A DNA stretch of 64,000 nt, taken from positions 186,001-250,000 of IMG/VR virus record IMGVR_UViG_3300034072_000758. One strand, 5' to 3'. The notes beneath the pieces are model-generated. The model saw nothing but the letters and a program-made list of their open reading frames with translations. It was not told the DNA's origin and made no database searches. Position 1 is the stretch's first letter. Every line of letters begins with the position of its first letter. The translations under genes were made by a program, and so were the position numbers. This document shows positions 30,805 to 61,434 of this stretch, one piece after another.

Positions 30805-31125
30805 ATGAGCCGCCAATATTATCCCAAGGGTTCTGTTCAAACCATCGAAGAATTTCTGAACAGCTTTGATGAATACGCAGCGAACGGCGAAGCAGTTCTG
30901 TTTATCGCCAATGGATCGACCGGGGAAATATCCACACTCTTCATTGACAGTTCTATGATCGTAGTTCATGATGACGGCGAATACATTCTCGGTAATTTCT
31001 TGTTCCCGATCCTGAATCTGGCGGAATACAACATCGGTCGCTTCACCGACGAAAGCACTTTCATGTTCCACAACATGCTTCACGCCAAGCAATTTCTGAC
31101 CCAGAAAGTGTCGGGTGTCTATTGA
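30805..31125 (+). CDS. hypothetical protein
   Basis: AGGAG RBS. Confidence 0.75.
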   Translation: MSRQYYPKGSVQTIEEFLNSFDEYAANGEAVLFIANGSTGEISTLFIDSSMIVVHDDGEYILGNFLFPILNLAEYNIGRFTDESTFMFHNMLHAKQFLTQKVSGVY

Positions 31126-31421
31126 TCACCTTCTCCCCTCAGTATCGTCACGACTGTAACCGATGCCGGTTCCTTGGCCATGTCAAGACGCTGTATTGTG
31201 AGTTTGACATGTACATCTGTAACCCGTCTCTGATCGCCCGTCTGAGTGACGAAGAGGGTGATTATCATTCGGGTGATCCCGCAATACTGGCGTCTAACTA
31301 TGACCGCCAGAAGCCGTCTTTTGACCAGAAAAACCCTTTGACCATCGCCTACCATCTTCACAAACAGATGGAAACCGTACTTCCATTATTCGTGCCGGGG
31401 TTCAATGGCTCTCTTCAATAA
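31122..31421 (+). CDS. hypothetical protein with an HDCxxC motif
   Basis: YRHDCNRCRFLG. Confidence 0.7.
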   Translation: MITFSPQYRHDCNRCRFLGHVKTLYCEFDMYICNPSLIARLSDEEGDYHSGDPAILASNYDRQKPSFDQKNPLTIAYHLHKQMETVLPLFVPGFNGSLQ

Positions 31422-31941
31422 CACCAAGGACATCGCCGCATTTCTGAATAAGAGCATCATTCCCGATGTGTCACAGGCGCGCATCACGCAGTTATATAAG
31501 GATGAGATCACGTGGAAATCGGCGGGTTACACAAATATATATCGGCATCTACCGTATAAGGTAGAAGCTTTGTATGGTGGTAAATTTGTGTTCACCCTCA
31601 CTATGCAAAAATCCAACCTGAGACAGGTCGGTAATCTCGGCCACAGTCGAAAAGTTTCCTATGGTATGGCAGCTTTGTCGGCGGAAGTTTTCATTTCTAC
31701 CATCATTATCGAAACCCCTGAATTTAAGGAAACGGTTGAGTTCCTGATCTCCGGGGATTATGATTACGATGTGCCACAGAAAGCTAAAAAGCATCTGATC
31801 AAGATTACACCAATGTACAGCCCCATTATCGGCGCGTGGTGTGTTAGTGGTAATGCTCACCTAATGTCTCACGAGTTCATCCCTCTCGCCAGTGAGCAAG
31901 AGATCGATGAAAAACTTATCATAATGAAGTTGGCCGTATGA
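31405..31941 (+). CDS. CT-motif family protein
   Basis: Ends ASEQEIDEKLIIMKLAV. Confidence 0.8.
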   Translation: MALFNNTKDIAAFLNKSIIPDVSQARITQLYKDEITWKSAGYTNIYRHLPYKVEALYGGKFVFTLTMQKSNLRQVGNLGHSRKVSYGMAALSAEVFISTIIIETPEFKETVEFLISGDYDYDVPQKAKKHLIKITPMYSPIIGAWCVSGNAHLMSHEFIPLASEQEIDEKLIIMKLAV

Positions 31942-32453
31942 AAAAGCTCCCAGCAGACAGTCTCGTTTTCCTGTTCGATAACTGGAAATGGTTTCTCGAA
32001 AACAGCACTCAGCTTTGCGCCGCACCCGACTACGGGCGTCATACGCGCACAGTGGGCTACACCTATAGAACCAAGACACACAGCCTTCTCAGTACGCTGG
32101 TAATCACCCATCAAAACGTCATAGAGAACATCAACGACATTCTGGGTAACCCGGTCGTCAAAGTTACGATCCTGTTCCAACTGTCCGAGGCTGGTCTTAA
32201 GCGCCATCCTGATAAAGGCTATCTGTATTCAGAAGAGTTCATAGTGTTCCGTTACGATCTGTCTGGATGCTTCGACACATCCAAGCCAATGATCGATGTT
32301 ATTGGTGCTCTCAATGACGGCGGGACATACGCAATCCCCATGAACCACCCTTCGCCCGAATATCTTCATAAGACAACCGATGTCTTTGAAATGAAATGGA
32401 GCGAGGATGTTCTGGTCGATTTCATCATGAACCAAAAGTTAACTAAAAATTGA
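31938..32453 (+). CDS. CT-motif family protein
   Basis: Ends WSEDVLVDFIMNQKLTKN. Confidence 0.8.
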   Translation: MKKLPADSLVFLFDNWKWFLENSTQLCAAPDYGRHTRTVGYTYRTKTHSLLSTLVITHQNVIENINDILGNPVVKVTILFQLSEAGLKRHPDKGYLYSEEFIVFRYDLSGCFDTSKPMIDVIGALNDGGTYAIPMNHPSPEYLHKTTDVFEMKWSEDVLVDFIMNQKLTKN

Positions 32454-32485
32454 TTGCTGAGATACCAGTGTGATATACTTTCTGT

Positions 32486-32794
32486 ATGTCATACTTTCAT
32501 TTCAACAATCTCACCCCGGCTGAAAACGAACGCTTGTCCATGCTCATAGAAGAGTTCTGTGAGGCCGGTCAGATTATCGGTAAGATCGGGCGGCACGGAT
32601 ACGAAAGCTATAATCCGTATGATGCTGAACCGGAAACTAATCGCCAGCTTCTTCGCAAAGAAGTTCTTGACGCTTTAGGCGTAATCGCTTTAATGGTCGA
32701 GCGTGGTGATATGGCTGCGTTTTCCGATGAAGAAATCCAAGCCTCCAAGGTCAAACGCGCCTCAAGGTTCACTCACCACCAAAACGAAGAATAA
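32486..32794 (+). CDS. MazG-like nucleotide pyrophosphohydrolase
   Basis: ERLSMLIEEFCEAGQIIGK..RKEVLD (EExxE...EvxD pattern). Confidence 0.7.
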   Translation: MSYFHFNNLTPAENERLSMLIEEFCEAGQIIGKIGRHGYESYNPYDAEPETNRQLLRKEVLDALGVIALMVERGDMAAFSDEEIQASKVKRASRFTHHQNEE

Positions 32795-33195
32795 TGCTCA
32801 CCTACGAAAATGTCATAGACTTACTCGATCATCTTCCGCTTACGAAGCACGAAGGCGAACATGGGTTGTTCTATTATGATTTTATTGATGACGATCTGGC
32901 ATTCGAATCGCATTTCCTCTTTACTAACAAGTCACGAACCGGAATGCAACTCACTTTCGCTTATAGAGGGTTAATGATCCACGGGCGCATAAGTATTTTA
33001 GGCACCGTGAATATAATTAACGTTTCGGCTGAAACCCTGAGCGCGTTCCCAAACAAGTTAATATCGGTCGGTGGGAACGACTATATAGTCAGTCATCCCA
33101 AGAATTTCTGGATCAACATTCAACGTGAGAATGTTCAAGAGGATGAAGTAGACGAACGTTTGATCTCTCTGATGATAAAGTATGGCTCGTGCTAG
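32794..33195 (+). CDS. CT-motif family small protein
   Basis: Ends VQEDEVDERLISLMIKYGSC. Confidence 0.85.
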   Translation: MLTYENVIDLLDHLPLTKHEGEHGLFYYDFIDDDLAFESHFLFTNKSRTGMQLTFAYRGLMIHGRISILGTVNIINVSAETLSAFPNKLISVGGNDYIVSHPKNFWINIQRENVQEDEVDERLISLMIKYGSC

Positions 33196-33572
33196 ACTTC
33201 CAGACCGTATGTAAAATTCTTCATGGCAAACCATACAAGACAAGTATGTCGAGGGACGACGAAATGACATTTCGTCACGATGACCTGAGCATACATGTTA
33301 CCTATCGCGTTTCGATTGGTGGAATGGAAACGATAGGTATTTTCTACGATATAAAATTCCGCGATGTATTTTTCCACGGGCTGATCGCCGAAGCTCCGCT
33401 ATTTCACGAAACCGATGTTCGATATAAAAAAACTAAAGTGACCAAGCTCGCTATAGGTAATCATGACGCATACCCGGTAATAGAAAAAGGATTCTGGTGC
33501 GAAGTCAATCCAGCACTTACACAGGAAGAGGTTGACGAACTGGCGACGGTCATGCTACTTCTGTATTCATGA
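33189..33572 (+). CDS. CT-motif family small protein
   Basis: Ends LTQEEVDELATVMLLLYS. Confidence 0.85.
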   Translation: MLDFQTVCKILHGKPYKTSMSRDDEMTFRHDDLSIHVTYRVSIGGMETIGIFYDIKFRDVFFHGLIAEAPLFHETDVRYKKTKVTKLAIGNHDAYPVIEKGFWCEVNPALTQEEVDELATVMLLLYS

Positions 33573-33904
33573 CATTATCATTTGATACCATTTGTTCTAT
33601 TTTAGACCGAACCGAATTTCATAATAAGAAGTCGAGTATAGGTGGGTTTTTAGTTTCATATGATTGTAAAAGTCTTAACGATCTCTATGTAAAAATCTCA
33701 ACACCTAACACCATCATAAAAATAGAAATGACGTATTCTAAGATTTCACTATATACAGGTGTATGGCGCAAAATAACTTTAGATTATGTGCCAATTATTT
33801 TATATAATCACGATGATTGTGAAGCAAAAGTCCACATAGAAAGTGATCTTCCGCAAGATGAACTTGAGGAAGAAATTTTACTGCTAATTATGAATTATGT
33901 GTAA
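33569..33904 (+). CDS. CT-motif family small protein
   Basis: Ends LPQDELEEEILLLIMNYV. Confidence 0.85.
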   Translation: MTLSFDTICSILDRTEFHNKKSSIGGFLVSYDCKSLNDLYVKISTPNTIIKIEMTYSKISLYTGVWRKITLDYVPIILYNHDDCEAKVHIESDLPQDELEEEILLLIMNYV

Positions 33905-34826
33905 ACAGCGGACCTTGGATGAAAATCTTGCTGTCTTCCTTGTACAACCCTTTATTCATCTGAGCCATCACATCCGGGGTCATATGGCGTCCTCGAACTT
34001 CACGCTTCTGACCATGACCGATGATGTGAACCTCTACAGGAATATCCCCGTAAAGCCTCTTGATGGCGCGCATACGGTTGCGACCTTCATGACCGACAAC
34101 ATGACCTTGTTTTGAGTAATCACCATCAGACCATTCGTCTGGGAATGCTACGAGAAGGAACGGTGCGCCAATAGCTTCACCATCCTCAAGCTTCTTCTCG
34201 ATCTCATAGCTCGTATCGAAACCCCCGGAGAGAGCCAATTCGAGAAAGACACTAGGCTTCATCTTTACACGAATGCCTCGATAATCGATATTGGCATTAT
34301 AGCCGGTTGCGCCAAGTCCATAAACATTATCGTATGTGAGGTCTTCTTCGAGCATATTGACAACTTTGACTTGACGAGCGGGATAGAATGGAACGTACAC
34401 AGTCCCCGGATTATGATTTGTATCATCATAAACCGAAAGCCCATCAAAACCTTTACTGATCAGTAATTTCTTGAATTGGTCGTTATCCGAGACGTAATCA
34501 GCCAAAGATGTGTAGGCATCTTCACTAGCTTCATAATAATCATCAAAGTCTTTTCCGGTCAATTCATTGTATGCCGAAACCAAATCATCTTCTTCGGCTG
34601 GGCGTTCTATTTTCAAATAAGCACAATATATTTTATCGCCAAATTCCTGAGCGGTTCTCTTATTCCCGGTCCACCAACCAGATGCGAATTGATCTATGTT
34701 TTTTCCTGTACCATGATAGCAGAGAAGAGGTTCTTCATTATGATCTACTATTTGACTATTTCCAAACCATGACTTGATGTCATTACCTATGATCTCATCC
34801 AGTTTCATATGATTTTCCAATAGCAT
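33888..34826 (-). CDS. ADP-ribosyltransferase-like (polyvalent-protein type) domain plus ParB-like domain; putative head-internal protein
   Basis: WFGNSQIVD..PLLCYHGT..AYLKIERP..FDGL; linker MLEED; GHEGRNRMRAI; late promoter upstream. Confidence 0.7.
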   Translation of the reverse strand: MLLENHMKLDEIIGNDIKSWFGNSQIVDHNEEPLLCYHGTGKNIDQFASGWWTGNKRTAQEFGDKIYCAYLKIERPAEEDDLVSAYNELTGKDFDDYYEASEDAYTSLADYVSDNDQFKKLLISKGFDGLSVYDDTNHNPGTVYVPFYPARQVKVVNMLEEDLTYDNVYGLGATGYNANIDYRGIRVKMKPSVFLELALSGGFDTSYEIEKKLEDGEAIGAPFLLVAFPDEWSDGDYSKQGHVVGHEGRNRMRAIKRLYGDIPVEVHIIGHGQKREVRGRHMTPDVMAQMNKGLYKEDSKIFIQGPLFTHNS

Positions 34827-34844
34827 TTCAGACAGTTGATAAAC

Positions 34845-34852
34845 TATTTATA
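34845..34852 (-). promoter_or_regulatory. T4-type late promoter
   Basis: Exact TATAAATA on the minus strand. Confidence 0.7.
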
Positions 34853-34869
34853 GTTTATTACCATGAATA

Positions 34870-35440
34870 GTCTTTATCCCCCCACAGTAAGAATACCAGA
34901 ATTTAGGCGCAATTCGCCTATTGTCCGTTTTCTCACTGTAGGGGGATTAGATTACCACTCGGTATAACAATTACGAGGCTGACATGAGGCTTACATGTCG
35001 GATCAAGCGGACTCCCGGTCTCTTGATCGCAACCATCGCTAATCCATGAACATCTGAGAGTAATACACATTGAAGTGAGAAAGGGTTGTTCGACGCAGTG
35101 AGGATAGCTTTCGCCAGTGTCTTTTTCGTCAAGTCCCAATCCTTACAATCAGCGCAGAAGTCGGTTAGGAAGTTAATTTCCAGCAACGCCATCAAATCTT
35201 GTTATTTCGTCTGACCAGATAGCGTTCGGCCATTACGCAATTACTCAGCGCTGGCCGTCTTTTTATGATCCGTTCATATTCTTTCGAATATCGGTGGAAC
35301 CGTGTCAGGGTGGGGTCTTCCCTGTCGATAGCCGTTCGACTGATCTGTCTCATGCGGTGGGTCATGTTCCCCACACAACGTTTCGCCCCGATGTCAAGGG
35401 CATATACATCTGATCAATGGTCACTTGCCACAGTGATACC
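34870..35440 (-). ncRNA. candidate structured non-coding RNA
   Basis: Stem 34877-34893/34930-34946 with an inner hairpin; hairpins 34981-34999, 35001-35028 and 35227-35257; ATATTC-GAAA-GAATAT tetraloop on the minus strand at 35276-35291. Confidence 0.4.
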
Positions 35441-35455
35441 CAAGTATATTTTGAA

Positions 35456-36181
35456 TCAAATTAAAGAGTCAATTTTTAGATTCCTATATTCGGATAGGTT
35501 ATTATACGCTCGTTGTTTCTTTGTTCGTCCATAATTTCTCCAATATTCGAGAAATTCCTCTTCATTTTTGAATATAGGTGTTCCTGATCGAAAATCATTT
35601 ATTGATCCTGTTATACTACCTATATTGGTGGTGTTACCACTACCGGCCTTATCACCGGATATTTCCCATTTTTCTCTGACAAATATTTCTATATTATTGT
35701 ATGGTAGTTCTATATAAGATATATCGTCGGTGCGCCAGCAACATTCGGTATTTACATCGACTCGATTATAAACAAATCCTACTACCAAATGAGATACATA
35801 CTCATTAAAAGGATACAATATATTTTTATTTGGAGTTTTTTCATTCATAAAGCTAGTATAGCTACCTAATGTATATGAAAATTTATCCTTGTTATTTCGT
35901 CTATAGGTAGTCTTTATATCGATTGCTATATGTTTTTTATCTTTGTGGAAGAATGTGAAATCTGGATATTGATTTTGTGTTTCGGCATCTTTGAATATGT
36001 AGTTATAGTCACCTGCTATTTCTTTCAACGTTTCTCGCGTTACCAATTCAAATACAGTTGAAAGCACTTTAGTATCTGTGCCAAGAGGTATTACTGTTCC
36101 ATTTTTTGCGACGAAGCCGCAAATGTTGTAATCGCTTAATCGTTCATTTATGCGGATGGTCAAGTCATGTATTAATGTCAT
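35456..36181 (-). CDS. type II restriction endonuclease, EcoRV family
   Basis: Collinear with EcoRV: PLGTDTKVLSTVFEL, QNQYPDFT, IAIDIKTTY, TLGSYTSF, AGSGNTTNIGSI, EFLEYWRNY. Confidence 0.95.
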   Translation of the reverse strand: MTLIHDLTIRINERLSDYNICGFVAKNGTVIPLGTDTKVLSTVFELVTRETLKEIAGDYNYIFKDAETQNQYPDFTFFHKDKKHIAIDIKTTYRRNNKDKFSYTLGSYTSFMNEKTPNKNILYPFNEYVSHLVVGFVYNRVDVNTECCWRTDDISYIELPYNNIEIFVREKWEISGDKAGSGNTTNIGSITGSINDFRSGTPIFKNEEEFLEYWRNYGRTKKQRAYNNLSEYRNLKIDSLI

Positions 36182-36224
36182 TACTAATATTAATACATGA
36201 TTAAGTATTTTATCAATTTAATAT

Positions 36225-36839
36225 TTAATGAGCCTCGAAATAGCTCTTTATTTGTTCCTTGCTCCAAACAATGTAGAAATTGTGTTCAGGAACAATTACA
36301 CCATCGTAAGCAGTGAACTTCAAACAATTCTTCAAAAACAAAGCTGTATCGTCTCTGTAGAAATCATTACCCAACATATTCAGACCACGCAAATAGCTTT
36401 GACCAACATAACCTTTGATAGCGGCAGTAATGACCTTTTGCTTACCCTCGTATTCCCAATCACCAAAGTTCCAGAGAGTATCTTCCAAGTCCGGCGCATT
36501 CATGATCAGCTTGGTGATAACTGCGACCGGAAGGTTTTTATTGGTATCGCCTCGATCATCAACAATAAGGGGTTTCTTTATAGACAAGAAAGACGGACGA
36601 ACGTTGCCGCTATCATTTTCACCCCCGGTGTACCCACCAGCAGCATCGGGGTCACCCGCGAAATAAATCCCCGCACCATACATGTCGTTACCGGTCCCCA
36701 GCTTATTGTCATCGAAGTCGTGGAACGAATGAGGGGTGCCGTGGAAAACCATCAACGGTGCGCCGTTCTTATCTACGACCTTCGATCCTTTAAACCAAGT
36801 ATCAAACTCATTGGAATATAATTCAAACAATCTCATCAA
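36225..36839 (-). CDS. ADP-ribosyltransferase-like (polyvalent-protein type) protein
   Basis: MRLFEL start; WFKGSKVVDKNGAPLMVFHGT..YGAGIYF..FLSIKKP..YDGVI. Confidence 0.75.
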   Translation of the reverse strand: MMRLFELYSNEFDTWFKGSKVVDKNGAPLMVFHGTPHSFHDFDDNKLGTGNDMYGAGIYFAGDPDAAGGYTGGENDSGNVRPSFLSIKKPLIVDDRGDTNKNLPVAVITKLIMNAPDLEDTLWNFGDWEYEGKQKVITAAIKGYVGQSYLRGLNMLGNDFYRDDTALFLKNCLKFTAYDGVIVPEHNFYIVWSKEQIKSYFEAH

Positions 36840-37528
36840 TCTATCCAGTGATCGTGCTTTGGCATGTTAGGTAATTTTGGGTTGATTTCGTCCGCCTTCT
36901 TTATAGCGATCTCTTTGGATGTGTAAACACCCACGACCACACCTTTGTCCAGCACATACCAATCTCTACCGATATTGACGATACGTGTTCTATTCCATCC
37001 GCTCGGAGAAGAATACGAGCGATCCAATTCATTTTCTTTTTCGAGAGCCTTCTTTTCAGCTTCTTCTCTCGTTTTATACGAATTGAAGTGTATGCCATAG
37101 ATGAACATGGCATACGGAAGATCGCGCCCCGGAAAATGGACGACTTCGATTAAGTGGCGAAGGAAGCGCTTTTTAGGCTTGAATTGAATAACCTGAGCAT
37201 CTTCGTTGAACAGGTCCAGTTGTGTGTCTGGACCACGATGTTTCTTGTAGGCGTCTAAACGTTCCTGAGCATTAACACGTCTTACCCATCGATCTTGTGT
37301 GTTTCGCGCGGCATCCGATTTGGCATCAAGCTCATCTTGAAGCTCGCGCATCTTAGCCAGCGCAGCTTTTTTCTGAGAAGGTGTGCCACGATCTCTCTGA
37401 TGAACCAGTGGCTTCCAATGACTATCATACCAAGAATCCCATTCATCTTGGGCTTGGTCGGCAGCTTTCTTCAAGTCCTCAACAGACGGCTTAGTGGATT
37501 CAAGTAATGGAATAATTCTGAAACGCAT
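36836..37528 (-). CDS. putative head-internal late protein
   Basis: MRFRIIPLLES start; ATAAATA 4 nt upstream of the ATG. Confidence 0.7.
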   Translation of the reverse strand: MRFRIIPLLESTKPSVEDLKKAADQAQDEWDSWYDSHWKPLVHQRDRGTPSQKKAALAKMRELQDELDAKSDAARNTQDRWVRRVNAQERLDAYKKHRGPDTQLDLFNEDAQVIQFKPKKRFLRHLIEVVHFPGRDLPYAMFIYGIHFNSYKTREEAEKKALEKENELDRSYSSPSGWNRTRIVNIGRDWYVLDKGVVVGVYTSKEIAIKKADEINPKLPNMPKHDHWID

Positions 37529-37532
37529 GATG

Positions 37533-37540
37533 TATTTATT
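37533..37540 (-). promoter_or_regulatory. T4-type late promoter
   Basis: AATAAATA-catc-ATG. Confidence 0.65.
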
Positions 37541-39596
37541 TCGCTAAAGACTTAAGGGTGGCCGCATATCCATCGAGCGCCGGGTCAACTTCTTCCTCGT
37601 CTTCCTGCCGATCTCTATCAATATTTTTCATTAACTCTGAAAGGAACTTTGGATCAATATAGAATGGTATATTGAATTTATCGGCATAGGCTTTTGTGTC
37701 AATGATGATTTCGATGACTTTCTTATATGAAATAATTTGACGCCATTGATCACCACGAATTTCGATCTTTTTCACGTAACGATTGAAATTTTTTATGTCG
37801 CCTATGACGAACTCTTCGGACCACGTGAATGATCGTCCGTGTCGATCACCGCGTATGTCTGGGACCATAGCACCCTCTGGGCGGTCTCGATTAGCAAAGA
37901 CACGTTCTCCATCGACCGGGATTATTTTGTGTCTCTGGGCCAACTTGGTGTGATCCATAGTCAAGAGGATAATTGAACCATGATCCAGACGTGGATTTCT
38001 AGTGAAGCTGTTCCCTTTCACGTTTCCTAAACCGGGAATGTTGTGAACCCAACGTGCTTCCATTGTGTTGTTGGAAAAGGTCGCTTCGCCTTTGTGGCTG
38101 TCCATAAAATGATAGAGAGGATAGTCACGACCTTCGGTCAGGGATTCGGTTACAGGCTCGTTCAGGTACATATGAACGGCTTTCACGAACTCCCGCGCGG
38201 CCTTTTTGAAATTGAACATCCCAACTTTGTTGCGTATTTTTTCGAAGAATACCGCTGGGCTGAATTTAAGGTCGAATGCCCCCCATTCGATGATCGTTGG
38301 CTTACCGATACCCAGATATGCTTTGATGGCCGCTGAGAACTCTTCCTTGCGCCTTGTTGCGATCCTCTTGGCAGCTTTTTCATCACCAAACTTCGAAAGG
38401 AAGATATGAGCGTGGGAAATAATCATCGGATAGAACTCTACGTTCTGATTATGGTACTCGTCATCTGTGTCAATTTGTCTAGCATCCTTATCGGCATACT
38501 GTAAATATTGAACAGCGTGAGCCAACTCGTGTTCAATCGTACCACGGAGATTTCTTATTCCTCTGTTGAATACACTCGTAATGTAGTTCGTAATATGACC
38601 CGGCTTATAAAGAATAGAGTCAGTATCGATTGCCCCTTCGTTGAGATCGAATATGTTACTCAGAACAAGATGTATTGTTTTAGTTTTAATGATGTATTGT
38701 CCGCGATAAGTATTCTTCTTTTCTCGATCAACAGTCATCACTAACGTAATTGGATGACCGTTTATTTCTCCGATGTCAGAGTTCTCCCAAAAACCATATG
38801 CGGGTGGGGTGTGGGACAGATCGACATTGGTAATTTTGTATAAGTTGAGAATTTTAGAAAGCTCTTGACGGAAATTGTCGGTTGTCCCTTTGGCTTTATA
38901 CGCTTTGGCGGTCAATATTGAATTGACGTATTCGATATATGATCTAACAGCATAAAGCTCAATGTTCTTCATCAAGTTCTTTGGAACCTTGATGACACCT
39001 TCCGATACGTATTTCTTTGGACGATAAACATAAGACATTCCCCCGGTCTTCTCTAACCAAGGGAACTTACCGAAGAATTTGTCGTTGACAACCTTGTAGA
39101 CTTCGATGCCGATACCTTTTTCGTCGGCAATTTCTTTCAGGAGGTTCATGATCTTTGAACCAAGTCCTGACCCAGCATCCTTTACAAGGATTTCAGATAG
39201 GCCGATCTTATCTTTCAAAAAGGTAGCGTCTAGGAATACGCGCCAGCCATCCCCGCCTAGAATATACCCATCGCCTGAGAAGATCATTTGCGACGTTTCC
39301 CAATCTGGCTCTTTAGCCTGTTTGGAAAAAGTCGCCCCCAATTTATCACGCAAAATCGACGCCAGATACGGTACTAAAAAATGTTGTGGTGGTTTTCCAT
39401 CTTTCTCTTTCCACATATTCCAGATGCGCTCAACACGCTGATAAGTGGCTGTCCCCGGCGTTGATACATGATCAGCAAAGTCCTGTGCGGAAGAGAAACG
39501 CGGGGCCATATCAAAAAGATCATGAGCATCGATACCCGATCTCTTGTAACGAGGCAAAAGGTCTTCTAAGGATTCGGTAAGCTCACTATAACGCAT
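37536..39596 (-). CDS. multidomain polyvalent protein (GNAT-like, zincin HExxH, C-terminal ART-like module)
   Basis: MRYSELTES start; GSGLGSKIM; EHELAHAVQ; YVSEG and LTESLTEG junctions; GRDYPLYH module shared with 39618-40277. Confidence 0.75.
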   Translation of the reverse strand: MRYSELTESLEDLLPRYKRSGIDAHDLFDMAPRFSSAQDFADHVSTPGTATYQRVERIWNMWKEKDGKPPQHFLVPYLASILRDKLGATFSKQAKEPDWETSQMIFSGDGYILGGDGWRVFLDATFLKDKIGLSEILVKDAGSGLGSKIMNLLKEIADEKGIGIEVYKVVNDKFFGKFPWLEKTGGMSYVYRPKKYVSEGVIKVPKNLMKNIELYAVRSYIEYVNSILTAKAYKAKGTTDNFRQELSKILNLYKITNVDLSHTPPAYGFWENSDIGEINGHPITLVMTVDREKKNTYRGQYIIKTKTIHLVLSNIFDLNEGAIDTDSILYKPGHITNYITSVFNRGIRNLRGTIEHELAHAVQYLQYADKDARQIDTDDEYHNQNVEFYPMIISHAHIFLSKFGDEKAAKRIATRRKEEFSAAIKAYLGIGKPTIIEWGAFDLKFSPAVFFEKIRNKVGMFNFKKAAREFVKAVHMYLNEPVTESLTEGRDYPLYHFMDSHKGEATFSNNTMEARWVHNIPGLGNVKGNSFTRNPRLDHGSIILLTMDHTKLAQRHKIIPVDGERVFANRDRPEGAMVPDIRGDRHGRSFTWSEEFVIGDIKNFNRYVKKIEIRGDQWRQIISYKKVIEIIIDTKAYADKFNIPFYIDPKFLSELMKNIDRDRQEDEEEVDPALDGYAATLKSLAK

Positions 39597-39600
39597 CCTT

Positions 39601-39612
39601 TATTTATAAATA
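39601..39612. promoter_or_regulatory. palindromic bidirectional T4-type late promoter
   Basis: TATTTATAAATA gives TATAAATA on both strands, 4-5 nt from the divergent ATGs. Confidence 0.8.
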
Positions 39613-39617
39613 TTGAA

Positions 39618-40277
39618 ATGGATACTTGGGATGAAAGACTTAAAGCTCTGAACGAAGCATTGCTGAACGAAGGACGTGATGCGCCTTTGTTCCATTGGAC
39701 AAGGGAACAATCGTTATTCAATATAATATCAAGTGATTATTTGACGGCTAATCCTAGTAATGTTCCGATGGGCGTTAGCACTTCACGAAATCTGAATACT
39801 ATATTTTTTAACAATAGATTCGCGGTTCTTATTCTTAACCAGTCAAAGTTGGCTCAACGATATAAAATAGTACCTTTATACGGTGATAGCCCGGTTCAGA
39901 TGCGCGCCAATGAGCAAGAGGAACGCATCATTACCGCAAAATTGGATGATGTTCATAAGTACATCACCGCAATTGGTATTGACAGCAGCGTCTTAGCCTA
40001 TGGTTCTAAAGAATTAAGTGATGTTGTGAGTGATAGCTGGCAACTGGTCGGTGTGATGCTTCTGGCAGCATACGCGACCAAGCACCATATCCCCATCGTA
40101 GACAAGAAGTCTATCAGCAAGAATGGCGCTTGGTCTAAAGACATAACGGCAGAAATCAAAGCAGTAGCTAAGAAAATCAAAGCCGTGTGGGACGCAGAAG
40201 AACCGGAAGATCGCACGAGCAATCTTCTGTCAAACTTTAATTATCAGAAGGATATTCTTAGTCCTTCGGATAAGTAA
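39618..40277 (+). CDS. putative head-internal protein, paralogue of the C-terminal module of 37536-39596
   Basis: LLNEGRDAPLFH..STSRN..LNQSKLAQRYKIVP..EQEERI. Confidence 0.75.
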   Translation: MDTWDERLKALNEALLNEGRDAPLFHWTREQSLFNIISSDYLTANPSNVPMGVSTSRNLNTIFFNNRFAVLILNQSKLAQRYKIVPLYGDSPVQMRANEQEERIITAKLDDVHKYITAIGIDSSVLAYGSKELSDVVSDSWQLVGVMLLAAYATKHHIPIVDKKSISKNGAWSKDITAEIKAVAKKIKAVWDAEEPEDRTSNLLSNFNYQKDILSPSDK

Positions 40278-40563
40278 ATCCGAAACCATCGTCGCCCCAG
40301 AACTTCGCATAGAAGTCCCACTGAGCCTTGTCAGTCGTGTCAAGAACCACGACCTTTTCGGTTTCGGCACGAAGAGTCGTGTTGGTCGAAATCATGGCCA
40401 TGTTGCTGGCCTTGTCGCCGCGAATCTCAGCGTAACGATGATTGCCGCCGCGTTCAGCCATACCACGCAGCGCTGCTTGCGCGTCACAGGACGCCCTATC
40501 CAGAATGATGATGTTAAGACCCGGTTTGTTCAGGTCAACGGTAAGATAGTGAAAACCGCTCAT
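40258..40563 (-). CDS. hypothetical protein
   Basis: AGGAG RBS and a promoter upstream. Confidence 0.75.
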   Translation of the reverse strand: MSGFHYLTVDLNKPGLNIIILDRASCDAQAALRGMAERGGNHRYAEIRGDKASNMAMISTNTTLRAETEKVVVLDTTDKAQWDFYAKFWGDDGFGFTYPKD

Positions 40564-40590
40564 ATTTTGTCTCCTATACAGTTTGAGACA

Positions 40591-40618
40591 AGAGTACCAC
40601 GAACAAAGTAATTGTCAA
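40591..40618 (-). promoter_or_regulatory. sigma70-like early promoter
   Basis: TTGACA-N16-TACTCT. Confidence 0.65.
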
Positions 40619-40619
40619 G

Positions 40620-41102
40620 CTACTTTGCGATATACATTTTAAGCCACATCAATTCATCTTCAATATCTGTGAACCGGCCAGTAACACGGAAATCATCTTC
40701 GTCGGCAATGACGCACAATATATGATCTTCACCCGTGGCATCCTTACAAATGAGTAGGTGTTTAATCCGCTCATGGCGTGAATACCATGAATGAAAAGTT
40801 AAGAATATCTTATATTCAAAAGACTTGCTTTTGAAAAGCAATATGGCCTTACTGGTATAGGAAGCATCCTGAACCAGTTTGAACTTATATGTTGTGCCGA
40901 AAATTTCCAACACTCGTTCGCTATGCTGAACACGAACCTTACCATGCTTGGTATCATGGCGGTAAAATTGAGTGTACTTCACTTCCCCGGCGCGCTGATA
41001 CAAATCGAGAATGACATCCATCTTGATGCCATGCTTTTCCAACTTATCTTTGATTTGAAAGTTGTGAGCGTTTGGATTCTTGATCTTCTTTGGCTTTTTC
41101 AT
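40620..41102 (-). CDS. CT-motif family protein
   Basis: Ends RFTDIEDELMWLKMYIAK. Confidence 0.8.
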   Translation of the reverse strand: MKKPKKIKNPNAHNFQIKDKLEKHGIKMDVILDLYQRAGEVKYTQFYRHDTKHGKVRVQHSERVLEIFGTTYKFKLVQDASYTSKAILLFKSKSFEYKIFLTFHSWYSRHERIKHLLICKDATGEDHILCVIADEDDFRVTGRFTDIEDELMWLKMYIAK

Positions 41103-41476
41103 AGGATAGCCATTTTGATAAGTAACTCGTCCTTGATCTGTTCTTCTAAATCATCTTCGACCGTGACTAACAAAGATTCGTAAGGCATGAACTCCGCATC
41201 ACGATCAACATTATCACCAACCACGTCATAGAAGACACGATAAGCATAGCTTGTGTGCTCTGTCTTATACCATACGAAGACGGACAGGTATACTATCCTA
41301 CTGTTTTCTGCGGGTTCATCCGCTATGGTATATTCGATGTCGAAATTAGGCGTAGTGACCGTGAACCCAAAAAGATTTAATTCATCTTTCTTGGTGAATG
41401 TTGGGCTATTCGATAAGGAATTAAACCAACGCCGTTTCCGAAACACTTCATTATAAAGATATTCTTCGAACGTCAT
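41099..41476 (-). CDS. CT-motif family small protein
   Basis: Ends DLEEQIKDELLIKMAIL. Confidence 0.8.
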   Translation of the reverse strand: MTFEEYLYNEVFRKRRWFNSLSNSPTFTKKDELNLFGFTVTTPNFDIEYTIADEPAENSRIVYLSVFVWYKTEHTSYAYRVFYDVVGDNVDRDAEFMPYESLLVTVEDDLEEQIKDELLIKMAIL

Positions 41477-41856
41477 GCCACATACAACGTAAGAATCATC
41501 TTCGCATCCGAAAGCGCTTCGCTATTAAAAGTGTTCTCTACCGCCATGTAATCGATGTAACCAAGACAATCTTGGATGAAGGCGGTATCTTTGGTGAAAT
41601 AGTATTTGGACCGATAGACCATATTCTCTTTGAACAGAGAGATTTCAAAGTGAATGATCTTAAACCCGCGCCGTTTGATAGTCACGATCATAGACAGATC
41701 GGCGTCTGAGAATTTAGAGGTGCTGGACCATTCCGCACCGGGGCCTCGGCTTCGTGCTGCGTCATTCACATCAGACGAGTTTTCCATCTTCTTCGCCATA
41801 TCTAAAGCGATGAAGGTATCGAGCAAAAAATAAGAAAAGGTTGATGAATAATTCAT
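41473..41856 (-). CDS. CT-motif family small protein
   Basis: Ends FNSEALSDAKMILTLYVA. Confidence 0.8.
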   Translation of the reverse strand: MNYSSTFSYFLLDTFIALDMAKKMENSSDVNDAARSRGPGAEWSSTSKFSDADLSMIVTIKRRGFKIIHFEISLFKENMVYRSKYYFTKDTAFIQDCLGYIDYMAVENTFNSEALSDAKMILTLYVA

Positions 41857-42173
41857 TGCCCGAATATGACGATGTTCGTGATAAGGTCTTCCAGAATGTC
41901 TATATCATACTCATAATGAAAATCAACCGCTTTACCACGTAAACCCATGAACATTGTCGGTGGAGAAATTTCATAGGTAATGTAGGCTTTACCATGTGAC
42001 GAATGTATAATCACACAAGTGTATCCATGACCTTTGCTTCTGAGTTCAAGACTAGCGTTTATCTGCGGGAGTTCTAACGTTCCTATTGGATCGGTTATTG
42101 GCCCTGATCTATCAATTGTAAACAGATCAAGATTTTCTCTCACATATTCATAAAGGACTTCTGGGATTGCCAT
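41853..42173 (-). CDS. CT-motif family small protein
   Basis: Ends YDIDILEDLITNIVIFGQ. Confidence 0.8.
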   Translation of the reverse strand: MAIPEVLYEYVRENLDLFTIDRSGPITDPIGTLELPQINASLELRSKGHGYTCVIIHSSHGKAYITYEISPPTMFMGLRGKAVDFHYEYDIDILEDLITNIVIFGQ

Positions 42174-60201: not shown

Positions 60202-60717
60202 ATGATTACTAAAAAACGCATGAGTGAAATGTATGAATTGAACCGAACACTGGCTACGTCAATAATGTTCGGTGTTAATGATTTAGAAGATTACTTAGAA
60301 AAGACCGAATTGAGCCTCGAAGCTCAACTATCTATTGTCACTTTCGAGCTTCAATATGTAACGAATTTAAAAAACGTTCATGAAGATGTATTGCGTTATG
60401 TAAACTATGCTTTCCAACGCATGTGTAAAGATGACGTTAAAGCCGGAAATATTAAAAATATTTGGGACTGCGCCTGTTCAATGTTTTGTTACACGGGCAA
60501 CTTTATGGAGGTTCTTTATCCAGATACGCAAAAAATATTACGGGATCACCTCATGAATAATATTGAGCATTTTAAGGAAGAGGAAAAGGCATATACAAAT
60601 AGCTTCGGTACAGTGGGCCTCGATCCCAGCCGCAAATCGGTGATACAAAAAATAGCGAACAATATCTTCGACAATGATGAAGATCGTGTCAAATTCGTGT
60701 TGCTGGTTTCTTCTTAA
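60202..60717 (+). CDS. helical protein with CT-motif tail
   Basis: LSLEAQLSIV..LKNVHEDV repeat-like segment; ends DNDEDRVKFVLLVSS; start moved to MITKK. Confidence 0.7.
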   Translation: MITKKRMSEMYELNRTLATSIMFGVNDLEDYLEKTELSLEAQLSIVTFELQYVTNLKNVHEDVLRYVNYAFQRMCKDDVKAGNIKNIWDCACSMFCYTGNFMEVLYPDTQKILRDHLMNNIEHFKEEEKAYTNSFGTVGLDPSRKSVIQKIANNIFDNDEDRVKFVLLVSS

Positions 60718-61421
60718 TAACGCTTCTTCAATAGCTTGGCAACTTCAAAGAAATTCGAGCCGTCTTTGACAAGCTTCTGTGAATATTTGGCCGGGATCGC
60801 CCACATTTCACGTGGGATAAGATTTCCCCCACCGTGAGCCACATGTGCTCCCAGATCGATGAATGCCAGCTTTTCGCGGTCGTTCATATCTTTGAGGATG
60901 GCTTTACCGGCTCTGGCCCAAGATGAATATTCCCCGTCCCTGACTTTACGAAGTGTACTGGCCGACAGGTTATATCCCGCACGTCGCGTTACTTCTTTGA
61001 CATCCGGGGAGTTGATGATTTCAGGATACTTCTCCTGAACATATTTCTGATCACGATTGAGACAATGGGCGACAAACTCACCTACGCTGTCTTCATCTGG
61101 TTGTATGTCTTGAAGGTCCGAACCGTCGAATACAAAGACATAGCCGATATTCTTTTCCCAGCCCTTTGGAACGGTTGAGCCGAGGAAATCCCCACCAATG
61201 GCGTAGACCGTAGCGTAGCCTACGTTTTGGGCCAGATAGACGCGCCCCGCAACCGGACGCATGTGGGGCTTACTTTCACCGTACTTGACTTCGGTAGCCG
61301 CAGGATCAAGACCCTTCTTCCAGATGGCAAGGGCGGCTTCTTTCGATCCTGTTCCGTGATAATAGCGGACGCCCTTGTGAATATCTAAAGGGGCGGCTTC
61401 CAAGAGTTCTTCATAACGCAT
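60714..61421 (-). CDS. ADP-ribosyltransferase-fold late protein
   Basis: MRYEELLE start; YYHGT..IWKKGL..RVYLA..YATVYA; ATAAATA 5 nt upstream. Confidence 0.7.
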   Translation of the reverse strand: MRYEELLEAAPLDIHKGVRYYHGTGSKEAALAIWKKGLDPAATEVKYGESKPHMRPVAGRVYLAQNVGYATVYAIGGDFLGSTVPKGWEKNIGYVFVFDGSDLQDIQPDEDSVGEFVAHCLNRDQKYVQEKYPEIINSPDVKEVTRRAGYNLSASTLRKVRDGEYSSWARAGKAILKDMNDREKLAFIDLGAHVAHGGGNLIPREMWAIPAKYSQKLVKDGSNFFEVAKLLKKRY

Positions 61422-61426
61422 AAGCG

Positions 61427-61434
61427 TATTTATT
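61427..61434 (-). promoter_or_regulatory. T4-type late promoter
   Basis: AATAAATA-cgctt-ATG. Confidence 0.65.

Follow-up and report, generated by a model that had tools for sequence, protein, structure and literature searches.

The IPI, IPII, IPIII and Alt proteins of bacteriophage T4 represent a system in which a short propeptide, made of aromatic and hydrophobic residues followed by the tripeptide [LI]-x-E (leucine or isoleucine, any residue, glutamate), is shared by otherwise unrelated proteins of the head. The T4 capsid targeting sequence (CTS), MKTYQEFIAE, is removed by one cut of the prohead protease gp21 and is enough to load foreign proteins into heads (PMC8442874, PMC3012670), residues 4 and 7 being the main determinants of targeting and residues 8 and 10 those of processing (PMC9026906). 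A candidate system of the same type is described here for a 64,000-nucleotide stretch of viral DNA (the window; bases 186001-250000 of IMG/VR record IMGVR_UViG_3300034072_000758, a megaphage genome of 516,805 bp with direct terminal repeats, estimated to be complete), in which an initial annotation had read a cluster of five genes at 33888-40277 as encoding capsid-packaged effectors with T4-type cleavage sites. All five open reading frames (ORFs) are present at these positions; one lies on the plus strand, the others on the minus strand. The genes are thus real; as a locus the cluster is not special, its genes being five members of a genome-wide, predicted late set of about 25-30 with a putative capsid-targeting and processing leader of the T4 type, whose products are probably loaded into the head and injected.

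Other described systems share parts of this arrangement. Polyvalent proteins are predicted to be delivered with the DNA and to act in the first moments of infection, and like T4 Alt they follow a logic by which late genes supply what is needed within seconds of infection (Iyer et al. 2017, PMC5512222). Giant phages such as phiKZ and SPN3US are described as packaging many different proteins in the head; their prohead protease cuts these at a short motif with a final glutamate, and they are ejected into the host (PMC5694885, PMC7411985). In the Rak2-like jumbo phages (CBB, GAP32, 121Q, phAPEC6), ATAAATA is a predicted late promoter (PMC5259590), and bubblegrams give evidence of internal head proteins in 121Q and phAPEC6.

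Within the cluster, the claim that all five genes begin with [LI]-x-E-rich leaders is borne out, the motif lying within the first 18 residues in 5/5. The 686-aa protein (37536-39596, minus strand) starts MRYSELTE (nt 39573-39596), with [LI]xE beginning at residue 6. On the plus strand, the 219-aa protein (39618-40277) has an 18-residue leader, MDTWDERLKALNEALLNE (nt 39618-39671), with the motif at residues 11 and 16, followed directly by an ADP-ribosyltransferase (ART)-fold domain that opens with GRDAPLFH. The 230-aa protein (36836-37528, minus strand) offers the ten-residue candidate MRFRIIPLLE|S (motif at residue 8; the bar marks the predicted cut). The 204-aa protein, called as an ORF at 36225-36839 on the minus strand and with its motif at residue 4, likely starts at the ATG at 36836, which gives a product of 203 aa (36225-36836) with the N-terminus MRLFELYSNE..., and the 312-aa protein (33888-34826, minus strand) starts MLLENHMKLDE, with motifs at residues 2 and 9 and an alternative start at M7 (nt 34808). 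The bare tripeptide is weak evidence by itself, because it is common, occurring in the first 15 residues of 15% of the 754 proteins obtained by crude gene calling across the genome (overall density 0.01 per position), and because two pairs of these N-termini are homologous: the 312-aa with the 204-aa protein, and the leader of the 219-aa protein with an internal junction of the 686-aa protein.

The longer leader pattern, by contrast with the tripeptide, is a strong signal at the level of sequence. The shared start was first apparent among the N-termini of the genome's paralogous proteins with an ART-PolyVal domain, and the regular expression M[RK][LYFIMW].[ED][LIVM] matches 25 times in the called proteome, 24 of these within the first 60 residues. 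The predicted leader is 8-19 residues long, has the core [YFLW]-x-E-[ILFV]-[ILT]-x-E or ...N-L-[VI]-x-E, and ends in [LI]-x-E before a small residue. Two classes are seen: class 1, with the consensus M-R-Y-x-E-[IL]-[IL]-x-E, heads about 20 genes and has a variant, M-R-Y-x-E-L-x-E, that is one residue shorter; class 2, M-S-N-W-Y-R-N-L-V-N-L-x-E, heads five further genes. A position weight matrix (PWM) trained solely on the leaders of metagenomic homologues, which avoids circularity, was used to scan every Met position at the head of an open frame of 60 codons or more (4378 in all), with the reversed genome as control. Scores of at least 14 bits were reached at 15/4378 positions and at none in the reversed genome, the top scorers all being gene starts. 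Among the five cluster proteins, that of 686 aa matches strongly (24 bits) and those of 219 aa and 230 aa plausibly; the two with an ART-PolyVal domain, of 312 aa and 204 aa, match weakly (12.3 bits for the latter).

Relatives elsewhere carry the same leaders. Near-identical DNA is present in subsurface and soil metagenome runs, and megablast of the region against GenBank phages gave no match at DNA level. A full HMMER scan with the 686-aa protein retrieved 306 relatives, mostly free-standing proteins of about 190 aa that resemble its C-terminal or its N-terminal domain; the C-terminal domain has more than 150 homologues, again mostly free-standing. Their N-termini read MRYNEIISE|ARDYPLYH, MRLSEILME|GRDAPLYH or MRYREIVTEN..., and in 81/105 relatives an [LI]-x-E stands exactly 8-10 residues before the His of LYH, with G, S or A as the next (P1') residue. 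Among distinct IMG/VR loci, 31/32 have [LI]-x-E directly before GRDAPLYH, 29/32 of them at the N-terminus with leaders mostly of 8-10 residues, and some show a ten-residue form, M-x-x-F-K-Q-[FY]-L-x-E. Some metagenomic relatives are truly polyvalent, as in a 2290-aa polyprotein with eight tandem ART copies, each preceded by [LI]-x-E. An identical cassette of promoter-like box and leader occurs on several adjacent genes of a 1.1-Mb contig (1,136,180 bp, GCA_043956695.1), which also carries a relative of the GRDxPLYH protein and may be a still larger phage genome, a concatemer or a misassembly. A tblastn search of the 686-aa protein against GenBank phages, Rak2-like phages included, gave no match, the 219-aa protein had one partial match there, in Bacillus phage SP-15, and a word-index homologue search with it returned only the query itself.

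The leaders head domains of unrelated fold, namely ART-PolyVal, Tpt1/DarT-like ART, GNAT, a predicted ParB/Srx domain, Acb1 (5e-23) and a gp0.7-like kinase (6e-11), while many leader-bearing proteins have no family match. In agreement with the two ART-like modules of the initial annotation, the Pfam family ART-PolyVal (PF18760) scores above its cut-off of 31.2 bits in both the 312-aa protein (40.2 bits; residues 28-156, nt 34359-34745, minus strand) and the 204-aa protein (72.5 bits, E 7.8e-20). The family has seven matches in the genome, five above and two below the cut-off, and homologues of the 204-aa protein are found in Rak2-like and Dickeya jumbo phages; in the structure model of the 312-aa protein the ART-PolyVal half is of low confidence.

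The GRDxPLxH module is indeed present twice, residues 478-655 of the 686-aa protein aligning with the 219-aa protein as a divergent paralogue (BLASTP E 2e-8). Structure modelling indicates that this module, too, is an ART-fold domain, of the Tpt1/DarT-like kind. For the C-terminal GRDYPLYH domain of the 686-aa protein (residues 489-686, nt 37539-38132, minus strand), an AlphaFold model built on a 144-sequence alignment has a predicted local distance difference test (pLDDT) score above 90; its best match in VIA is Tpt1 (7yw4, Z 10.9), followed by DarT structures (Z 8.9, 8.6, 7.5 and 7.4) and then ART toxins, and Foldseek gives a probability of 1.0 to 7omw. The best structural matches are all of the ADP-ribosyltransferase fold. 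With this module predicted to have the ART fold, the cluster would hold four ART-fold modules, two more than had been counted. The module has no Pfam family match and shows invariant R, H, S, R and E-E positions.

A ParB-like module had been seen in the 312-aa protein, and its C-terminal half (residues 166-308, nt 33903-34331, minus strand) is modelled with pLDDT above 90 in a ParB/Srx fold, the top eight VIA matches all having this fold (Osa, sulfiredoxin, SerK, SbnI, PadC and ParB-N among them), though at Z values of only 5.8-3.5. Leads in the Atlas point to ParB_N, the motif GHEGRNRMxA is conserved, and Pfam gives no match for this domain. The GNAT-like motif of the 686-aa protein (about residues 70-195, nt 39012-39389, minus strand) stands through its homologues and not through a Pfam match of its own: 12/23 homologues of the N-terminal part match Acetyltransf_1 (best 1.6e-6) and 7/23 match Acetyltransf_7 (9e-9), the motif DAGSGLGSKIM is visible, and a profile comparison with GNAT structures in the PDB is weak (E 0.22). 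As to the proposed zincin, the HELAH string exists in the middle domain (residues 356-360, nt 38517-38531, minus strand), inside a predicted helix, which makes the domain a zincin candidate by motif only; the region is modelled at low confidence, with faint Atlas leads to LPD1, LPD23, ArdC and M78. Both the GNAT-like and the HExxH region have pLDDT below 50 in the 686-aa model, so the model gives no fold evidence there. The HExxH region was also considered as a paralogue of a 441-aa HExxH protein of the head module, and this was rejected at zero similarity. For the 230-aa protein there are only weak matches to DUF7336 and phrog_3002, with no usable Atlas match and no informative family. At least two disparate domains, as in polyvalent proteins, are found in the 686-aa protein (GNAT-like, HExxH, ART-fold) and the 312-aa protein (ART-PolyVal, ParB/Srx).

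The spread of one leader over at least six unrelated folds bears on the possibility that these are ordinary cytoplasmic late enzymes, in which the N-terminal likeness and the [LI]-x-E belong to the domain fold itself, for instance as its first helix or strand, and were inherited by descent in a few families. Such a reading accommodates the conservation of [LI]-x-E-G-R-D-A-P-L-Y-H as one block, internal tandem copies included, as well as the two homologous pairs of N-termini noted above. It accounts poorly for two leader classes, 8 to 20 residues long, before one and the same domain at the same point, for the modelling of residues 482-484, at the internal junction of the 686-aa protein, as a low-confidence linker, and for a PWM made from one family that retrieves other families in the genome and the IP proteins of T4; we regard it as quite improbable.

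Expression of the set is probably tied to a T4-like late promoter. Four cluster genes lie behind an ATAAATA box, as had been noted: on the minus strand, the box at 39601-39607 is 4 nt before the ATG of the 686-aa gene and that at 37533-37539 is 4 nt before the ATG of the 230-aa gene; on the plus strand, the box at 39606-39612 is 5 nt before the ATG of the 219-aa gene; and the 312-aa gene has its box, TATAAATA at 34845-34851 (minus strand), 18 nt ahead of the first of its ATGs. The boxes of the 686-aa and 219-aa genes overlap and diverge, forming TATTTATAAATA (39601..39612) in the 21-bp spacer between the two. Because the 204-aa gene has an ATG that overlaps the stop codon of the 230-aa gene, the two are probably co-transcribed and translationally coupled, and the box at 37533-37539 probably serves both. 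ATAAATA occurs 115 times on both strands of the genome, about as often as base composition predicts, and 46/115 boxes are followed, after 3-6 nt (4-5 nt in 45 cases), by the ATG of a frame of 50 or more codons, with no Shine-Dalgarno sequence between. All of the 13 best leader genes have a box 4-6 nt before the ATG, against 40/754 called genes (5%), and an N-terminal [LI]xE is found in 22/41 box genes against 100/713 others (odds ratio 7, p 1e-8). Ordinary Shine-Dalgarno sites are found at other head genes. The genome also has a gene for a gp55-type late sigma factor (phrog_12791, 6e-76; phrog_234, 7e-18), and the late timing of the tagged genes is predicted from the box, this sigma factor and the co-occurrence with structural genes.

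In T4, the late promoter box lies at -13 to -6. With the box placed as in T4, a spacing of 4-5 nt would make transcription begin at the A of the ATG or at an adjacent base, so that by analogy the first cistrons of these late units are probably translated from leaderless mRNA. Since the best leader genes all have a box 4-6 nt from the ATG and lack a Shine-Dalgarno sequence, their conserved first codons could in principle meet a nucleotide or translation need of leaderless late mRNAs, of the downstream-box kind, and be no protein signal. Three observations largely refute this explanation, which is left with a very small probability. About half of the box-fused genes have no leader, and among these are genes for structural proteins of the virion, for tail fibres and for a head-tail adaptor; only 8/29 IMG/VR homologues with an N-terminal leader have a fused box, several others having a purine-rich, Shine-Dalgarno-like stretch; and the conserved positions use synonymous codons (CGT/CGC/AGA, TAT/TAC, GAA/GAG). 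Because of the 8/29 and the synonymous codons, the leader appears to be no by-product of leaderless translation.

The machinery that would read such a leader is also encoded. A prohead protease of the T4 gp21 family (Peptidase_S77, PF03420, 75 bits, 1.5e-21; genome 323908-324354) lies in a head module with portal, scaffold and protease in T4 gene order and the Gp23 capsid protein (3.8e-91) adjacent, and Peptidase_S77 is found in 3/5 large viral contigs with tagged homologues, including the sole one that is at least 90% complete. The virion-protein families of PHROG found here are presumably those expected for the Rak2-like group. Within the protease ORF (genome 323839-324474) an internal Met is followed by a sequence that scores as a leader, MRLDYLTE|G; either this Met is the true start or the protease has its own targeting and self-cleavage site, which recalls the N-terminal site noted for gp21 (PMC9026906). 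The neighbouring acidic, core-like protein of 317 aa begins MRSILEE....

Measured against T4 itself, the megaphage leader shows the same pattern as the CTS, with one residue fewer before the aromatic position, and in the ten-residue IMG/VR form the spacing is identical. When a seven-column core PWM from the metagenomic leaders was applied to 49 T4 proteins, IPIII ranked first, IPII second, gp2 third and Alt fifth; T4 Alt begins MELITELFDE and stands behind a TATAAATA promoter.

The leader might nevertheless be a real N-terminal signal with another role, in cytoplasmic proteolysis or activation or in sorting to the baseplate or tail, with the enzymes acting late in the same cell, for instance by modifying phage or host components before lysis. 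A modular signal tied to late promoters suits any late sorting or activation tag, T4 Alt-family genes neighbour structural genes in the GenBank record, and the head location of the tagged proteins is a prediction from sequence. What speaks for the head is that it is specifically the head-targeting sequence of T4 which the leaders match in pattern and spacing, that the prohead protease and the acidic core-like protein have similar N-termini, that the only protease of the genome known to prefer [LI]-x-E works inside proheads, and that functions like those of Acb1, the gp0.7-like kinase and ARTs are of use when infection begins and not at its end. Another destination is accordingly judged unlikely.

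Under the preferred reading, of loading into the head and injection, a gp55-type sigma factor would transcribe the genes late from their ATAAATA boxes, giving a leaderless first cistron; the leader would dock the protein into the scaffolding core of the prohead, and the gp21-family protease would cut it off after the Glu. The mature enzymes would remain in the head, enter the next host with the DNA and act before any phage gene is expressed, as the four ART-fold domains and the GNAT and ParB/Srx domains of the cluster may do, together with injected cargo encoded elsewhere in the genome, predicted to include Acb1, the gp0.7-like kinase and more GNATs and ARTs. In other phages ARTs, the kinase and Acb1 act at the start of infection, yet here they appear to be wired late, and T4 Alt offers the analogy.

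The 686-aa and 312-aa proteins would probably be cut also at a relic leader between their modules. In the 686-aa protein, the leader-like M476-YLNEPVTESLTE488 (nt 38133-38171, minus strand), a Met plus a sequence that resembles the protein's own N-terminus (MRYSELTESLED), is followed by GRDYPLYH. In the 312-aa protein, M158-LEE161 (nt 34344-34355, minus strand) precedes the ParB/Srx domain. Relatives of the latter domain, free-standing or differently fused, begin at this junction (MKIQELLSE..., MKIIEALLSE..., MRAKEFIIED...), and the LNE|GRD of the 219-aa protein lines up with the [LI]xE|GRDAPLYH junction of homologues. Of the junction motifs proposed initially, VTESLTE and MLEE thus find support in homologues, which is limited to these two junctions (476-488 and 158-161), whereas YVSEG is a V-x-E and not of the T4 type. 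By their sequences, the two fusions resemble leader-bearing genes strung one behind the other, in which the cleavage motif was retained; the retained motif fits cutting by the head protease and fits a fixed part of the domain, and it does not separate the two.

A variant of the 686-aa gene is seen in soil-metagenome contigs, which lack 4 nt at window position 38150, exactly at the junction of the middle and ART domains. The ORF then stops at about residue 484 and the ART domain is shifted to another frame, which may reflect an allele that is naturally split or truncated, or else an artefact of assembly.

Several observations weigh against loading and cleavage of the T4 type. The 686-aa protein has nine internal [LI]xE tripeptides where about seven are expected by chance, and at GRDAPLYH the [LI]-x-E is conserved so strongly, tandem arrays included, that it could belong to the structure of the domain. 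The two ART-PolyVal proteins, with PWM scores of a low 10-12 bits, have a single [LI]xE, at residues 3-5 of the likely start; it would give a five-residue propeptide, shorter than any known T4 propeptide. The cleavage specificity of the megaphage protease is taken by analogy from T4 gp21, and the likely maturation region of the capsid protein has a V-x-E and no clear [LI]-x-E. CBB_455, the ART-PolyVal homologue in a Rak2-like phage, was not seen in the published mass-spectrometry tables of the CBB virion when searched by name and number only, and the region was found only in DNA runs or runs of unknown type among those kept as contigs, and in no RNA run.

Compared with T4, likeness extends to the gp21-family protease, the gp23 capsid protein, the gp55-type sigma factor, the predicted TATAAATA-like late promoter, the placing of one leader on otherwise unrelated proteins, and a candidate cargo that includes an ADP-ribosyltransferase, as does that of T4 in Alt. 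The megaphage set is about five times larger, with around 25-30 genes against about five, and is known here from the genes alone; it has at least two leader classes, the commonest one residue shorter than the CTS. Its predicted cargo consists mainly of enzymes of the polyvalent-protein kind, where T4 has small basic internal proteins, and its ARTs are of the ART-PolyVal and Tpt1/DarT-like folds and not of the R-S-E Alt clade. Further differences are the fusion of box and ATG and the multi-domain make-up of some cargo, with putative relic leaders at the junctions.

With polyvalent proteins the megaphage shares ART-PolyVal, a putative ParB domain of the DdrB-like type, a GNAT-like domain and a possible metallopeptidase. 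Its modules, however, are mostly split into small genes of one or two domains, each with its own late promoter and leader, there is no fusion to MuF or portal domains, and release is proposed to occur through the head-maturation protease at [LI]-x-E and not through an embedded MPTase. Giant phages like phiKZ resemble the proposed system in having head-packaged, processed and ejected proteins; they belong to another lineage with another protease family context, their propeptides are long and not a common decapeptide, and a T4-type late promoter is not involved. The cleavage motif of phiKZ is S/A/G-x-E and not [LI]-x-E. Rak2-like phages have the ATAAATA box and homologues of the 204-aa ART-PolyVal protein, but the CBB homologue possesses a Shine-Dalgarno sequence and has its box about 33 nt upstream, and a CTS-like leader is undescribed for them in the literature searched.

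The system is therefore of a type known from T4, while its scale, cargo, leader variants, junction relics and the fusion of promoter and ATG are undescribed in the literature searched. As a tentative extension, which may well prove too broad, a clade of megaphages in the T4 superfamily could have expanded the CTS system into a modular 'first-strike proteome', in which leader and late box together would mark a protein for loading and injection, the cargo would comprise Acb1, a kinase, GNATs and at least ten ART-fold enzymes, fusions would be cut at relic leaders, and many mRNAs would be leaderless and gp55-dependent. Should the tag act as it does in T4, capsid-borne proteins of uncultivated giant phages could be predicted from a late box together with an [LI]-x-E leader of 8-10 residues. 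Dozens of 'hypothetical' genes would then be recognised as one set of injected effectors, Acb1 and other counter-defence enzymes could arrive pre-made, and natural leaders would be available for loading foreign proteins into large capsids. This would join the T4 CTS experiments of Black and colleagues with the computational prediction of injected polyvalent proteins, with release of the modules ascribed, as a proposal, to the head protease. The fixed spacing of 4-5 nt between box and ATG raises a question on leaderless translation of late phage mRNAs.

Further members of the set lie outside the cluster. In the window, a tagged gene of 235 aa (60714..61421, minus strand; MRYEELLE|AAPLD...VRYYHGTG, 17.9 bits) has a box at 61427-61433, 5 nt before its ATG, and no Pfam or PHROG match. 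Beyond the window, a leader-bearing homologue of the anti-CBASS phosphodiesterase Acb1 (MKFRELLE|P; genome 10734-11306, plus strand) stands back to back with a 439-aa leader protein (MRYFEILNE; genome 9388-10707, minus strand), with overlapping divergent late boxes in a 26-bp spacer, a layout as in the 686-aa/219-aa pair. Further clusters of leader genes at genome 255156-264573, 278579-284202 and 494674-515656, most members of which have no recognisable domain, include the class 2 leader (MSNWYRNLVNLxE) and the T7 gp0.7-like kinase at 261059-261847.

The cluster also contains two features that the initial annotation had missed. In its middle lies an intact gene for a restriction endonuclease of the EcoRV family (35456-36181, minus strand; Pfam PF09233, 172 bits, E 2e-50, nearly full length), whose translation shows YPDFT and AIDIKTTY, corresponding to the PD...DxK catalytic motifs; having no leader, it is a neighbour outside the tagged set. 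No D12-class methylase was found in the genome, and GATATC has no site in its 517 kb where about 130 are expected. Given this total avoidance, the phage may be immune to its own nuclease, which could serve against host or rival DNA. GAATTC (144 expected), GGATCC (62), GAGCTC (46) and CTGCAG likewise have no site genome-wide. The second feature is the 630 bp between the EcoRV-like and 312-aa genes (34827-35455), which hold no ORF of 75 aa or more and only short ones of 60-74 aa; a scan of window positions 33000-41000 against Rfam gave no credible match, and the stretch could be a decayed gene or an unrecognised RNA. At both edges of the cluster, small genes of about 100-180 aa are arranged in runs (30805-33904, plus strand; 40620-42173, minus strand), and several of their proteins share similar hydrophobic ends (...LMIKYGSC, ...VMLLLYS, ...LLLIMNYV, ...LKMYIAK, ...LIKMAIL), so that they look like paralogous families.

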